In this document: positions 21,801-64,000 of the stretch, piece after piece | How positions within the stretch are numbered: the stretch's first letter is position 1 | Layout: every line of letters starts with the position of its first letter | Source of the DNA: Trichosphaerium sp. ATCC 40318 | Taxonomy: Eukaryota > Protista > Tubulinea | NCBI GenBank assembly: GCA_038496445.1 | Contig: JALMLS010000334.1 | Span: 244,124 to 308,123, forward strand | Length of the DNA: 64,000 bases | Direction of reading: 5' to 3' | Translations under genes and position numbers: made by a program | The notes under the pieces: model-generated | The model's database searches: none | The model's input: the letters and a program-made list of their open reading frames with translations, nothing else | Told to the model about the DNA's origin: nothing

Positions 21801-24601
21801 ATAGCGTTTTACAGTGGGCAAGTTTCACAATGCAACATGTTTACAGTGAGAATAACTGGGCGGGTTTCAAATACACTCCAGAGATTCTAATCTTAGAGCA
21901 TGGTATACCAGTTGAATGCGCTTTCCACATCTTGAGGCCATATCTTGCGCTTAAGGATCCAGACTTTAAACAACACTTTGATTTGACACCATGCATCAAA
22001 GACACAAGGTATGTAATTCATACGAGCTACTAGATTGCATTAACTGCCATTTAAGCATTGACCCTATGTTTTTTGAAATGTTCTGGCGTCTTGGATTCAG
22101 TGATTTGCACAACCCTAGAGAAATGTACGAAAAGGAGATTGAAACTCTATCTGCAAGTGTACGCCACAACTTTAATCATCAGTGACTAATGCCTATATAA
22201 GACCGATAGCTCGTCACAAAACATGGCGTCAAAACTTAAACTAGAACTGATAGCACAAGAGGTATAACTTCAACTTGTTTATTATATCCTAACCAAACTT
22301 TTTAAAGAAATGGCATACCAAAGTGATGGCTGAGCTTAATCGCGTAGCGCCTAGCTGGACACTTGCTGGCCAAACAAGTCAGTTGGCAGAGTTGCTAAGC
22401 AAATGTATTTTACCACGTGCCAGATTTTCAATGGAAGATGCAATGTATTGTGTCAAGTTTGTATTAATGCTTCACGATATATCTAACTTAAACATATTGC
22501 TTTATTTTGACAAGGTACCCTTTTGTCTCATTTCAAGTACCAATTACTCTTTTTTTTTGACATATGCCATTAGCTATTTTCAGATACGCGAGCAATATTG
22601 GTAGGTTGTACTGAAGCAGAGGCAGGCAGGATAGGAGTCTTTTTGTACGTACAACTTTTAGGAAAACTCAGATCTCATTTTAACTGTTTATTCAAAAAGG
22701 CGACACAGTTTGATGGCTGTTATGAAATGGAAAGCTAGCAGCAGTGTTTTCGAGAAGGAACGAGAGTCACACGTCAAACAAATGTCATTGAGCGATAAGC
22801 CACTGTCGCACCAAGGTACTATCCAATCCGGCTTTTGTGGATCTGCTGATGACGTTTTAAGGCTTCCGAAGACTTACATTGGTGTGGGAAACGCGATTGA
22901 AAGACCATATTCGTGCCCTCATAATGTCTAACGAATACATGCAGTGCAGGAACGCACTAACAGTTCTAAAGCATCTTGTTGGGTGCTTCCCAACGTACAA
23001 AAAGGTTGCAACCTTGATAGAAAAGATTATTTCACCTCTCGAGTCTGATGCACGTGAAGACTTGAAAATATTTGCCCAGAGGTATGTATTGCATTAACAA
23101 AACACGACGGACCAATGCTAAAATCTTTGTTTAGTTACATACAAGAATTGCACAGGGCAAGACCAGCACTGCTGGATGATAAACAATTCTGTACGAGCGC
23201 TAATTGTTTACTACTTTATTTTTGTACTATTCCTCTCACCATTATGTTAGTACGAGACAGAGGTGATTCAAAATCAAAATCGAAAGTTGACAGAGATGGA
23301 AAAAAGAGTGAACGATCAGAGAGGAAGTCAACCTCGGATAGAAAGCTACGAGGACCGCTTGAACCAGTAAAGCCTGTTATGGGTCCACCTAAGCCATCTT
23401 CAAAGTACGACACGCCAACACGCACTAAACTCGACACTGCCAGCAGCAACAGAGATGTTGGGTAAAGTGTTACCAATTTCTATTTTGTTAACACCGCATA
23501 GAATACGAGAGCGCATTGTAATGCCTAGAAACAGATCATCAGAACCTTCACGAAAGAGAAAGTTGAGCCCACAAAACTCTGATGTTCCTCAAGAAAAACA
23601 AGGAGATAGGCCACTAAAGCGACGGAGGAGCGCAGACAATGAGAAGGTAATGCATAAATGGTTAATTATCGGCTCACATTTAATGTAGGATTCACGTGAC
23701 GCTGCAGCAGCATCTAAAAGGCGGAAGGAGTTGATAAACAAAAGTTTAGAAGAGCGTACGGCTTTTTTATCATATTTCTATGTATTTTTGCTAACCTGGA
23801 GTAGCACGTGATAAAAAAGCTAGGCGCAAAAAGACTGAAAAGCGCCCAGAGAAGCCAGATCCTCTTGAACCGCCTCTAAAACGAAGAAAAGGTGACAGAG
23901 ACAGGTCTCGCGATCGTGAAAGATCTAGCGATAGGTCAGGCGATCGTATTGACAGATCAAACGATAGGCCAGGTGATCGCACTGATAGGTCAGGTGACAG
24001 ATCAGGTGATAGGTCAGGTGATCGTATTGACAGATCAAGCGAGCGCACTGATAGATCTAGCGATCGCACTGACAGATCAAGCGATCGCACTGACAGATCT
24101 AGCGATCGTAGTGACAGATCAAGTGATCGCACCGATAGATCTAGCGACCGCAACGAAAGATCCGAACGCGATAGAGCTGCTGACCGGCTTGAAAGGTTTA
24201 ATATGCGCGATAGGACTTCTGATCGCACTAACAGATCTAGTGACCGCAGCGACCGCAGCGATCGAAGTGAGCGAATGGACCGCTCTGTTGATCGCAGTGA
24301 CAGAGGCGATAGAGGTGACAGGGGTGACAGAAGCGATCGCGGTGAGCGCAGCGATAGAAGTGACAGAAGTGATCGCAACGAGCGCAACGAGCGTAATGAC
24401 CGTAATGAGCGTGATCGCGGCGATAGAGCAGACCGCGATCGCGAAAGACTGAGTGACAGGGACAGGCAAAGCCCAAGATCTAGTCCACGACTTAGCGCCA
24501 AAGAAGAAGAAAGTGATAGAGCCAAAAGAGCTATTAATCGCGAGAATAAACGCAAGGGAGTCGGTACTAGCAGGAGACATAGAAATGGCGATAGCAGATA
24601 A
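18808..24601 (+). CDS. THOC2: THO complex subunit 2, multi-exon, with Arg/Asp/Ser-rich C-terminal tail
   Basis: TQVKYNLFREESEGYSKVITEL, SIIGYFCLDPNRVL, VGRQLGKIGQSNPG, DSLKYVTDLSFDVLT, CILPRARFSMEDAMYCVKFV, SNEYMQCRNALTVL. Confidence 0.95.
23900..24470 (+). repeat. Coding low-complexity repeat (SDRTDRS 21-nt units, then xDR 9-nt units) in the THOC2 tail
   Basis: Repeated agcgatcgcactgacagatc-like units; these also create the long antisense ORFs in the track. Confidence 0.9.
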
Positions 24602-43508: not shown

Positions 43509-44422
43509 TAGTTGCTGCTCAAAGTGGCACTATGAACTGTAGTGTAATATACGAATGAATTCACCTGTTTGTTTGCAAACGCAATCCGTTTATTTCTGTG
43601 AACAAACAATACTCTACATGTCTCTTTCTTTTTTTTTTTTTCCACAGGGGAATCCATTTAAGAATTAGACTGGCAACAAATAAAGTGCACAAATTAGAAC
43701 GTAGACAAATGAGTACTGGTACAATAACAACAACAGGGTCAAAAAGCAAAAGGTGTAATGTAATATTGTGGCACATAGTGTACAGAATCTTGCCTCTTTT
43801 TTTTTTGTACAAAAAACTACGATAACTACTTACGTTGCTCATGATGTCAAGTGATCCCTGTCATTACCGCTGCTCTTGTGCCTGGAGTTCCTTGGAAAAA
43901 AAGAGGCGTCTTCGGTGCAGAGACAGCAGTGACTTGAACATCTTGACTCTAGCACATTAAGACTTCAAAAAAAAAAAAAAAAGGTGTACTTGCTTTTTTC
44001 TACGGTGTAAAAAGAAATAATTTCAAAATTCAATAGTTAAAGGGGTGGTACGTAAGACTCGTGGGACTCTGTGCGGTGTTAGGAACGCTGTCTTGATGAA
44101 AAACATCTGTGAATAAAAGGGAATTTTTTGGCCTCAGTGAATGAATTGTGCAATGAATGAAACTTCATTTTTGATTTGATTTGATTTGGATATGAATCAG
44201 ATTGATGTGACACCAGTAAAATCTAATTTCTCTTCTATTCCTTCCCTTTTCAACAAAGGTTACAAACAACAGTAAAGATACGTAACAGGTCTATAACCAA
44301 ACAAGGAGAAGCCTAAAATGGAAATGTCAAAAAAAAGTGGTAAAGGGATGGATGTTTCGAAAACAAAACCCCGTACCAATCCGGACAGCTTGAGTTAAAC
44401 TCGTGTTTCACTGCGTAGCTGC

Positions 44423-45898
44423 TTAAGCAGGGGCAGTAGGCTGTGCGCCTTCTTCGTTGCCTGGTACTTTGTCAGTCTGTTGATTTGCATCGGTATCGCG
44501 TTGATCGTCACCTGTTGCATCTTCTCTAGGAGGAGGAGGAGATGTCGCACGTTCGCGTGAGTCCTCTCTGCCCCTATCGTCCCTATCGCGAGGGGATGGC
44601 GATCGCGCGCGAGAGACATCTCCACGATCTCTTGAATCATCTCTACGGTCACGCGAGTCGCTTCGGCCACGACCACGATCTCTGGAGTCGTCCCTATCTC
44701 TACCTCTACCGCGATCCCTAGAGTCGTCTCTACCTCTTCCACGATCCCTAGAGTCATCTCTGCCTCTTCCACGATCTCTAGAGTCATCTCTACCTCTGCC
44801 ACGATCTCTGGAATCGCCTCTGCGCCCGCGTCTACGATCGTCATAGCTGTCACGTGAATCTCTACTTGGGCTCCTAAGAAAAAAATTGGTTTTTCGGCCT
44901 TGGCTGTATTGGTACAATTTTACCTCTTGCGGTCATCCTCAAAAACAGCGATAGTCTTGCCTCTTGAGACATGGTTAGTGTGAAAACAAGGAGGGAAAGA
45001 GGGACTAAACTTACCTCAATTCGGTGTCATCTACCTTCTTTATGGCGTATTCCATGTCGTCAGTATATTTAAATTCGATGACACCTTTGAATTTGCCGTC
45101 TCTGTCAGTCCAGACGTCGCCATACAACACTTCGCCGCATGTGCTTCTAAAGTGATCCTAAATGCAGCGTCAGTAAACAACGAATAGCTGTTTTTGTTTT
45201 CTGCTGTTGTGGTGCGTTGCTATCACGTGCGAATTAAATCCACAGTGTGTATGCGAGAATATAAACCCAAAATTTTTTTACAACTCTTCTTAACTGACGC
45301 CTAGTACCTTCAGGTCTTGCCAGCTCATGCCGCGCGGTAAATTTTCAATGATAATTCTGTTTTCGCTGCGCTGTGGAGGACCTCCTTTTTCAAAGCCTCT
45401 ATCGCGGTCTCTACCACGTCCTCTGTCATCGCGGCGTCCTCTGTCCCTGTCACCGCGAGTGCCATGTGACATTTCGACGATTATCCTTTCGCCATGCTAG
45501 AGTGTTGGGTTAAAAAACGGTTAAAACCAGAAAAACAATTTTGTGAGTTAATAGGAAAATGCTTTTCACATGCCAAGTCTGTTCCATCCAATGCGCGTAT
45601 TGCATCGTCTGCGTCCCTTGGATCGTCGTATTCCTTTATAAACGGTTATGGTGGTAAATGTAATCAAATATAGAGCTTTAAGGTCTCTGTGTAACGTACC
45701 AAGAAAGCGTAACCGTGTTTAAGGGTTATGTTGCGGATAGGACCTAACAAAGTCGAATGAGGTTAACAAAAATGACCACATACAATAGTGAGCAACAAGC
45801 TACCCTGGCGTACCGTATTGATCGAAAAGATGATCTAAATCTCTCTCACGAGTGTGACTGGATAAACGACCAATATAAACAGTGCAGCTTCTTGACAT
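44423..45898 (-). CDS. SR splicing factor with two RRMs (SRSF4/5/6-like) and an RD/RS tail
   Basis: TVYIGRLS..RERDL, KHGYAFLEYDDPRDADDAI; pseudo-RRM RIIIENLPRGMSWQDLKDH; RSPSRD tail. Confidence 0.93.
44640..44860 (-). repeat. Coding 30-nt repeat RDDSRDRGRG in the SR protein tail
   Basis: About six near-identical units visible in ORF 44423..44917. Confidence 0.9.
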
Positions 45899-60851: not shown

Positions 60852-61077
60852 CTCTACGTTGGCGTATGTAGTGTGTTGATCATAATTTAATTGCTACACG
60901 AGAGTTTAAGTGTGACAATTGAGCGGGGAGTTAGTGAATTTCACAAACTTTTTATTTGAAGTGTACACAAGTATTTGACATATAAAAAGGAGCACAATAG
61001 CCGAGAGAAGTACAAATATGTGGTAAACAGGGAGGGCCAGCGGCCGGTGCTAGGTGCTGCTGTAACACCACTTTTTT

Positions 61078-61503
61078 TTACAATTGCACAATTTCGGCTG
61101 ATTCATCTTGAAGAGAATACTCCAAAGCCGAGTCTACCTCGTCTCCCATTACCGATTGCCTGAAAAATGTAGAAAACTTCTCAACCGATGAAACGGAGCT
61201 CGCAGAAGATCTAGTAGAGTTGGAACTTGTGGACGTAGTTCGCAAGGCACGGTGGGCATGAGTAACGCCAGTGTTGTTCTTTTGTCTAAGAAGTACAAAT
61301 GCCAGTATCACAACCAACGCGAGCAATACAAGCGTGCCGATAGTGAGGCCTATGTACAAGTGTCCATTTGAGGTACTAATTTTCCAGTTATGGGTTATTC
61401 ACTGTTGTGCAACTTTATCCAAAGCGTACGATAATGCGTTGCACGGTTGTATGCAAATTACGGCAAGTACTATAAACGCAACCAAGCTAGGCGTGTGGGA
61501 CAT
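61078..61503 (-). CDS. Small type-I membrane protein with a minimal ectodomain and Ser-rich tail (1 intron)
   Basis: MSHTPSLVAFIVLAVICIQPCNA signal-like segment; a GTACGC..TAG intron joins it to TSNGHLYIGLTIGTLVLLALVVILAFVLLRQK. Confidence 0.68.
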
Positions 61504-61744
61504 GCGATAAAGTTGGCGGCTACGTGAGGTGGTAATGTAGAGAGTGATAGTGGATTTTTGTGACTTAAGCACGCTCAAGTCCGTTTTTGAAACAGTACCG
61601 CATTGAAATACGCACAAAACACACCAATGCTTCGTTTACGTCGTTTTCGATCATTGAATTGCGAAACAAACAAGACACGGCGTCGTAGGTGGTACTCGAG
61701 TGCGTTTGGTCGTTATTCTTCATTACTCTTACCGTAACAAGCCA

Positions 61745-63806
61745 ATGCGAGCTTTAAAAAGCGTACCGCTCGTAAAGACAATCGGTACATTGCACGTGGG
61801 TTCACGACGGCTGCGGGTTTGTCGCTGTTGGGGTCTATTGCGTTTTTCGGGTTATCTTATACAGCAAACTGCGAAACGGAAGATGCAGACAACAATCACG
61901 CTCAACTAACACCTAAAACTTATAAACAAGTGATCAAACAGGCTGATGAAAATTTAGCGTGTGGTGAAGTTGAGGAAGGAACGTGCGCATCAGTAAAGTT
62001 GCATGTGCCTGGTAATAACATTTTTAAGTTTGTCATATCTGAGTGTGGCATATCGCTTGTGCGAGCTCTCTGTCTTTGCACTGCCAATGCTAGTTACCAT
62101 ACCTTTTGCATTTTTCTCAGATACTAGGTGGCTATGGTGGCGTGCAGTGCACTACTTTCTTTCCAATGCTGGTGGTTTGTTGCAATAACATTTTTTATAT
62201 TGTTTTGTTGACTAATAGCTAGGTTGTTGGATAAAAATGGGACAATGGATATCAACTCGACCAGATTTGTACTATTTGATAGTAGATGTTACATCTTATT
62301 GTTGGTAGGTTTCCAAGTGCTTTGATTGATGAAGTTTCTCATTTTTGTGATGATTGTCCATGTCATTCTTTTTATAAAACCAAGTGTATGCAGGTTTATA
62401 TTTTTTCCCTCATAACTTTGTAGGTGCCATTGAACAAACTTTAAATATACCTATAAAGACATTGTTTGATGACTTACAGCTACAACCTATAGCTTCAGGT
62501 TTATCCATTTTGCCTATTTTCATTAACATACTTAGGAGCTATTGCACAAATACATAAAGGTATTTTGAAAGATGGTACCACAGTTGCTGTTAAAGTAACT
62601 CATCCATATATTACCACATCTGTGCATGTTGATTTGGCTTTGATGCAAACAATAGCAAACATGGTAATAGTAATTTTTAGATCTATGGATTTAACTATTA
62701 GTAACAGATTGCTTTGATACCTATTTTTCAATTTTTAAGCTTATCTGAGGCTACACAAGTGTTTGCACATTCTATGAAACAACAAATTGATTTGTCCATT
62801 GAAGCAAATAACCTGCAACAGTTTGCAAATAATTTTAGTACCAATGAATATGTTATATTTCCAAAGTAAGTCTGGATTAATTATTGGTGGTATTTATTTT
62901 AAAATAGACCAATTGATGGCATGTATGGCCATGATGTATTGGTTGAAACATGGGAATTTGGTCTGCCATTACAACATTATATCAAAAAAGGCATATTATC
63001 TACTAAAAAACACATTGCAAAAGTAGGCATTGATGTTTACATGCAAATGATGTTGCAAGATAATTTTATACATGCTGATTTACATCCAGGTTTTATTAGA
63101 TAAAGGTTGTAAATATTTATTTGTTTAGGAAATATATTGATTCAAAACAATAAATTGGTGATATTGGATTGTGGATTAGTTGCAACTCTCACAAGTAAGA
63201 TGTTATTAATATAATATGATTTTATCCAATAACTATGGTAGAATCTGCATTTAACAACTTCAAAGATTTGTTTTTATGTATTGTAACTGGTGATGGCAAA
63301 AAAGGTACATTCCATGGTTGTATAAATTAAAAAAAGCACAGGTGCTGAATTAATGATTGAAAGATCTTGTGGCTCAGCAACTACCCAAACCATGAAAGGT
63401 ACAAATATTTATACATTGTAAAATAGTAAATAACTGTTTAGAACAATTTATTAGTAATATCACACAACATTTTGATAAAATTCAACATGAAAAATTGGAT
63501 AACATTCATGTGGGTGAATTTTTATCTTATATACTTGATCAATGTAGATTATATCATGTTAAGCTAGAAAGTGGAGTTAGTACACTGGTGGTTGGCACAG
63601 CCATTTTGGAAGGTATTATTTTATAATAAATTAAAAAAACTCAACAAAATATAGGAGTTGGCCGTCAATTAGACCCATCATTGAACATAATTCAAGAAGC
63701 TGGCCCATATTTGCTTGGAGTAAAAGGCAATAACATTCAAATGGTGCCTTCAAATACAGAAAAAGTAATCATGATACAAAGGAAAATACAAGACTCTTTG
63801 CATTAA
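61745..63806 (+). CDS. ADCK2: ABC1/UbiB atypical kinase, ADCK2-like
   Basis: WIKMGQWISTRPDL, PIASGAIAQIHKG, VAVKVTHP, QIDLSIEANNL, MMLQDNFIHADLHPGNIL, ILDCGL, ILEGVGRQLDP; stop at 63806. Confidence 0.9.
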
Positions 63807-64000
63807 TAAATTATTTGTTTTCAACAATACAATGTAGATTTTTTATCAGGGCTGAAACTAAATAAGGCTTTTTTTGTAAAAGCCTTTTTTTTGCCACCAA
63901 ATACAGCCTTATTTTTCATCAAATTGCCTTGTTTTTGCCAAAAAAATGAGCAAATATGAAGCATTGGCCATAAACAAACAAACAAACAAACTTAACAATT

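Follow-up and report, generated by a model that had tools for sequence, protein, structure and literature searches.

Within the 64-kb window (the whole stretch of DNA analysed, 64,000 nucleotides), a single transcribed gene for an ADCK2-like protein, a mitochondrial ABC1 atypical kinase, runs without interruption, and in physically contiguous DNA, from a 5′ part in which CpG dinucleotides are plentiful into a 3′ part from which almost all of them have been erased. The decay is specific to CpG, and the two CpGs that persist are those that selection on the protein is expected to retain. We infer 5-methylcytosine (5mC) as the cause, protection by a promoter as the barrier and a methylated island downstream as the source. 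This reading, in which long-term methylation-driven CpG decay has been bounded by an active promoter, has in our estimate a probability of about 0.6, with a downstream island favoured over gene-body methylation.

The CpG-erased domain and its edge

The domain, its edge and the CpG-rich stretch that precedes it are as follows:

62143-64000, unstranded: CpG-erased, AT-rich domain with 2 CpGs in 1856 bases, reaching the end of the window
62062-62284, unstranded: transition zone between CpG-normal and CpG-erased DNA, placed by change points and extending from exon 3 to exon 5 of the ADCK2-like gene (approximately residues 114-160)
61601-61900, + strand: CpG-rich, island-like 5′ end of the transcript, with 28 CpGs and an observed/expected (o/e) ratio of 1.77

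Between 62145 and 64000, two CpGs are present versus 41.5 expected from base composition (CpG o/e 0.05), and throughout bases 1-62144 the ratio lies between 0.70 and 1.28. In windows of 1856 bases, the first 62 kb have a mean CpG o/e of 0.91 (SD 0.115, minimum 0.70) and a CpG count that is always at least 51; in 2-kb bins, their GC content is 0.38-0.45 and their CpG o/e 0.73-1.27. No 500-base window elsewhere in these 62 kb has a ratio below 0.43. The only CG dinucleotides 3′ of 62141 are those at 62258 and 63663, and the CpG-free gap between them measures 1405 bases, while the longest such gap in the remainder of the window is 195 bases. The observation is far beyond chance. The initial annotation had described a CpG-rich first 62 kb, followed past approximately 62145 by more AT-rich DNA with CGs at these two positions only; the exact count agrees, and the GC content is indeed 0.30 in 62145-64000 versus 0.42 (SD 0.017) in the first 62 kb.

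These data support a depletion that is specific to CpG and is not a by-product of low GC, because GpC has been retained and TpG and CpA have been gained. GpC, whose parallel loss had been named in advance as the mark of a low-GC artefact, has an o/e ratio of 1.45 in 62145-64000, where CA stands at 1.60 and TG at 1.42. The ratio for TG and CA together rises from 1.18 upstream to 1.49 past the edge; the final 2-kb bin taken as a whole has a GC content of 0.31 and o/e ratios of 0.10 for CpG, 1.53 for GpC and 1.49 for TG+CA. Decay in the CHG context was not seen in the desert, in which CAG and CTG drop no more than composition predicts, and the signature is therefore confined to CpG.

The edge was located by maximum-likelihood two-state change-point fits, with support given by the 2-lnL interval. 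The change point for CpG is at 62141 (support 62062-62284) and that for GC is at 62183 (support 62145-62195, approximately 50 bases). Counted per 100 bases from 61600 to 62300, CpGs number 9-10 and then 3, 2, 1, 1 and 0. Taken together, these counts and change points indicate that the edge is a transition of approximately 150-250 bases and not a single-base break. It falls at approximately residue 131 of the ADCK2-like protein, inside a continuous gene, as expected from the earlier proposal that the depletion begins mid-gene, and 550 bases separate it (at approximately 62141) from the transcription start (61594).

Among 300-base windows of the first 62 kb, for which the maximum is 1.79, the CpG ratio of the island-like 5′ end reaches or exceeds the 99th percentile, although this richness arises partly because the Arg-rich presequence has 13 of its 14 Arg codons in the CGN form. 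The two most CpG-dense stretches of the window lie elsewhere, at 24050-24550 and 44420-44880 (30-36 CpGs per 300 bases, GC 0.53-0.57). The edge itself carries neither a tRNA gene nor a member of an Rfam family, and tandem repeats and meaningful direct or inverted repeats are likewise absent from it. The 64-kb window contains no repeat or duplicate of the desert segment and no gene for a cytosine-5 DNA methyltransferase. The 194 bases that follow the ADCK2 stop codon, at which the window ends, also contain no CpG. Just past the stop codon, four copies of a motif made of GCCTT and a T-run occupy 63860-63945, a 17-nt inverted repeat (88%) pairs 63860-63876 with 63898-63914, and a (CAAA)5 microsatellite lies at 63970-63990; these elements may mark a region of termination or polyadenylation, or they may be where a repeat begins.

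One transcribed gene across the edge

The gene, its transcripts and its neighbor are as follows:

61627-63806, + strand: coding region of the ADCK2-like protein (ABC1 atypical kinase), with 15 exons encoding 531 aa and introns of 37-48 nt
61594, + strand: likely transcription start of the ADCK2-like gene, at which a cDNA contig begins after 21 unaligned letters, GTATCAACGCAGAGTACGGGG
61910-62630, + strand: spliced cDNA contig bridging the edge (record 3, run X1), 432 nt long and at least 99% identical, the joints of which are GT..AG or GC..AG
60961-61581, − strand: divergent neighboring gene for a small membrane protein, with normal CpG, covered by a cDNA contig (record 1) with a spliced intron at 61376-61429

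The gene model opens with an ATG at 61627 and closes with a stop codon at 63804-63806, and the reading frame remains intact across all 15 exons, as the initial annotation had stated for the desert. A single exon matches the Pfam family ABC1 (PF03109; E 8e-08). In blastp comparisons, ABC1/aarF-kinase proteins were matched with E-values down to 1e-118 and with 39-43% identity over approximately 400 residues, the latter figures being those of the Arcella, Protostelium and Tieghemostelium proteins. The best named matches are all amoebozoan (these three, Clastostelium, Armaparvus and Luapelamoeba), and they are followed by an aphelid, a heterolobosean and choanoflagellates. Database queries were single exons, and the full model was compared in scripts. 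When a 61-aa exon was searched against 1.84 billion representative proteins, the best match had approximately 58% identity on the exon and none was higher; over long stretches of the model, none of these proteins exceeds 45% identity. An exact look-up of one exon ORF matched no record, and metagenome contigs, scanned for exact 30-mers, contained no match either.

The KxGQW, STRxDLF, HADLHPGN and EG.GR.LDP columns are conserved in the model. We tentatively place the protein in the ADCK2 subfamily, and not in ADCK1/5, on account of its QW.STR.DLF motif and its N-terminal R..L..F.P helix. The edge divides the codons of conserved residues: R114, L118, F122, P124 and W128 lie in exons 3-4 on the CpG-normal side, and G140, K145, GQW and STR.D follow on the erased side; thus, one ancestral gene spans the edge and no fusion has occurred there.

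Evidence for transcription comes from one small public run with a depth of approximately 6, the cDNA nature of which is apparent from its spliced GT..AG and GC..AG joints. These joints confirm introns 1-4 and 7 of the ADCK2-like gene. The unaligned letters that precede 61594 correspond to a SMART template-switch oligo. The transcribed sequence of the neighboring gene, on the − strand, extends up to 61581, and the ADCK2 transcript starts at 61594 on the + strand, so that the two stand head to head with 12 bases between them, a spacing that implies an extremely compact bidirectional promoter.

The same transcripts bear on the integrity of the assembly. A chimera in which DNA of two sources had been joined at approximately 62145 would produce an abrupt change in composition such as the one seen here. 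However, the independent spliced cDNA contig described above crosses the edge, and one homologous gene continues through approximately 62145; an assembly chimera is therefore essentially excluded.

A 39-nt intron at 62089-62127 is of the GC..AG type and is confirmed by cDNA, and the other introns of the gene are GT..AG introns of 37-48 nt. In bases 1-62144, two hexamers are strongly over-represented relative to the Markov expectation: GTACGT, with 65 copies (2.9 times), and GTACCT, with 71 copies (3.5 times). Donors confirmed by cDNA are GTGCGT, GTGCGC and GTACGC. Splice donors seem to favor a C at position +4, often within a CpG at +4/+5, an unusual choice for base pairing with U1. The donors GTACAT (63305) and GTATGC (62386), which the initial annotation regarded as deamination products of GTACGT and GTACGC, are present in the desert; their derivation by decay gains no statistical support, as hexamers of this kind are no more frequent in the desert than upstream (1.9 versus 2.2 per kb). 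At 62222-62424, the sole covering cDNA contig retains intron 5 as far as a cryptic GT at 62305, beyond which exon 6 (62309-62385) is left out; the stop codon that soon follows the joint makes this an unproductive isoform. The cDNA set, small and with a depth of approximately 6, did not include the productive form, which the conserved FPSALIDE... segment requires. Skipping of exon 6 could be a hint of weaker splicing where CpG-containing donor motifs have decayed.

Surviving CpGs and the origin of the decay

The two CpGs that remain past the edge are as follows:

62258-62260, + strand: surviving CpG 1, in the CGA codon of Arg153 (STRPDL), a column with Arg in 20 of 20 aligned homologues
63663-63665, + strand: surviving CpG 2, in the CGT codon of Arg485 (GVGRQLDP), a column in which 11 of 20 homologues have R and 7 have K

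Arginine codons of the form CGN are the only class of CpG in which deamination on each strand alters the amino acid. The products would be TGA or CAA at Arg153 and TGT or CAT at Arg485, all of which change the protein, and R153 and R485 are therefore exactly the survivors to be expected. This agrees with the earlier statement that the remaining CGs are Arg codons in conserved motifs (R in all 20 homologues in the first case, R or K in 18 of 20 in the second). The sequence contexts of the two survivors are TCGA and CCGT. Elsewhere past the edge, NCG codons are absent from the Ser, Pro, Thr and Ala families (0/77, as compared with approximately 20% in open stretches elsewhere in the window), and all 109 codon junctions at which a G follows lack a CpG. 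The CGN share of Arg codons is 13/14 before the edge and 2/5 after it, and coding GC3 changes from 0.43 to 0.23. The mutational pressure has reached the protein itself: Arg makes up 1.1% of the kinase domain, the lowest value among 21 homologues (1.9-7.6% in the others), and three columns that are mostly Arg in the homologues are now K, S or Q. Such a pattern is the mark of CpG hypermutation that selection has filtered.

These survivors also bear on a RIP-like process, in which duplication would have triggered CpG mutation of a duplicated segment ending at approximately 62145. The sharp edge and the complete erasure would be in keeping with such a process. However, the gene is intact and without stops, its KMGQW, STRPDL, HADLHPGN and LDCG motifs have been kept, and the survivors track selection exactly, which points to slow decay under purifying selection and not to a burst. 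Given also that no duplicate is visible within the window, a RIP-like origin is highly improbable.

To gauge how far CpG decay explains the AT-richness, neutral evolution was simulated with additional CpG transitions on a background whose equilibrium GC was 0.42. With these transitions at 40-80 times the background rate, the simulated sequences reached a CpG o/e of 0.04-0.07, a rise in TG+CA o/e of 0.33 (observed, 0.31) and a GC content of approximately 0.35. An old CpG depletion, near equilibrium, is supported. The observed GC content is lower than the simulated value, at 0.30 overall; within the desert, exons have a GC content of 0.33, introns of 0.23 and the 194-base tail past the stop codon of 0.28. 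CpG decay accounts for roughly 60% of the GC drop, a shortfall that counts against the methylation reading, and the difference means that a second, context-independent AT bias is needed, for which low recombination or relaxed codon selection in heterochromatin may serve as examples.

The same excess of AT might suggest a mosaic origin, in which the 3′ part of the gene was replaced via recombination or gene conversion from a copy with a history of methylation and AT pressure elsewhere. The donor could be a transposon-captured or heterochromatic paralogue, or another subgenome, and the edge would then be a recombination junction and not a chromatin boundary. A GC drop that CpG decay alone does not explain is in line with this idea, as is the very sharp GC change point (62145-62195); a support of 50 bases would fit a structural junction too, and to that extent it counts against a boundary set by a promoter. 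However, the exon-intron structure and the frame pass smoothly through the edge with conserved residues on both sides, CpG density already falls over the approximately 150 bases ahead of the GC step, and the window holds no repeat or duplicate. Furthermore, a CpG-poor donor would still require methylation elsewhere. Such a replacement is therefore quite improbable.

The best reading is methylation in place, halted at the promoter. According to this reading, very long-standing CpG methylation in the propagating cell line would have covered the 3′ four-fifths of the ADCK2-like gene and no fewer than 194 bases beyond it, and deamination of 5mC would have turned nearly every CpG into TpG or CpA. 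The two CGN Arg codons at conserved sites would have persisted since deamination on either strand alters the protein. The first approximately 550 bases past the transcription start, which adjoin the shared divergent promoter, would have stayed unmethylated, and the chromatin of the active promoter probably excludes the methyltransferase, giving rise to a sharp edge. The methylation most likely came from a repeat or heterochromatin island just past the end of the window, from which it would have spread back into the gene.

A transcription-linked gene-body methylation would account for the same edge in another way: the promoter and the first approximately 550 bases would be unmethylated, the rest of the gene would be methylated, and the desert would end shortly past the poly(A) site. 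The position of the edge, approximately 550 bases 3′ of the mapped transcription start, is compatible with this arrangement, and the ADCK2-like gene is transcribed and CpG-rich in its promoter-proximal part. However, the other genes of the 62 kb show no depletion, although some are long and of a housekeeping type, among them the Nup192/205-like and BEACH-like genes, and the desert runs on through the 194 bases from the stop codon to the end of the window. In addition, gene-body methylation is absent in the amoebozoan studied so far (PMC12344493). We consider it unlikely, and a downstream island is preferred because no other gene in the preceding 62 kb carries the signature. The core of the initial annotation, namely long-term CpG methylation with survivors held by selection, is well supported by the sequence evidence; its claims on the size and nature of the domain, as the flank of a centromere, subtelomere or virus island, gain no support from the 194 bases that the window offers past the stop codon, and the accompanying notion of an otherwise unmethylated genome is not supported and is probably wrong.

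Comparison with known methylation systems

The decay of CpG under methylation is textbook knowledge. In mosaic ("fractional") methylation, CpG-depleted methylated domains lie beside CpG-normal unmethylated ones, for example in invertebrates such as Ciona and in the methylated repeat compartments of Physarum. The ADCK2 locus resembles these systems in its combination of CpG-specific depletion and TpG/CpA excess in one compartment with normal CpG in the other, and in the sharpness of the edge on a kilobase scale. By contrast, a single edge and 1.86 kb of the depleted side are visible here, and that side is the body of a single housekeeping gene which, as far as can be seen, contains no repeat.

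The lineage is probably related to that of Acanthamoeba castellanii, given that the best named ADCK2 matches are amoebozoan. In Acanthamoeba, repressive 5mC is found on transposons and other repeats, on viral insertions and on silent genes, and gene bodies do not carry transcription-linked methylation (PMC12344493). Similarly, methylation at the ADCK2 locus, as judged from CpG decay, would occupy a small part of the genome and leave most genes untouched. However, the methylated genes of Acanthamoeba are mostly silent and covered at their promoters (PMC12344493), whereas the ADCK2-like gene is transcribed and its promoter-proximal 550 bases have been spared; its transcription counts against the favored reading. 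The local spreading of methylation in Arabidopsis offers another parallel, in that non-repeat DNA becomes methylated through an adjoining methylated element and neighboring genes are affected, although here the element is assumed. Spreading in Arabidopsis reaches approximately 200-500 bases (PMC3167636), compared with at least 1.86 kb into the gene in the present case, a long reach that likewise speaks against a downstream source.

The arrangement is also reminiscent of the vertebrate promoter CpG island with a methylated gene body, since a CpG-rich stretch at the transcription start (o/e 1.77) abuts the CpG-poor body of an expressed housekeeping gene. It differs in that the GC content of this stretch is 46%, under the usual 50% criterion for islands, in that the island signal stems partly from the CGN-rich presequence, and in that the rest of the genome is not globally CpG-depleted. 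It is tempting to speculate that heavy and old CpG methylation can lie on the body of an expressed housekeeping gene, the start of which is protected by a CpG-island-like promoter, in an amoebozoan-type protist. This stronger proposition is decidedly doubtful at present. If true, it would mean that a vertebrate- or plant-like arrangement compatible with transcription exists where the 5mC of the lineage has so far been reported as purely repressive, and that such methylation could wear away both the splice-donor motifs that contain CpG and the arginine content of the gene.

Set against these systems, the ADCK2 edge is a clean but ordinary example and establishes no new principle by itself. It is, on the other hand, a precise and testable landmark that separates an island-like promoter region from a CpG desert inside one transcribed gene of an essential type. 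The locus could show whether 5mC in this lineage coexists with transcription, what halts its spread (here a promoter, and not a tRNA gene or the end of a repeat), and how far a mutational regime can reshape a conserved protein, which at this locus has been brought to 1.1% Arg and a GC3 of 0.23.
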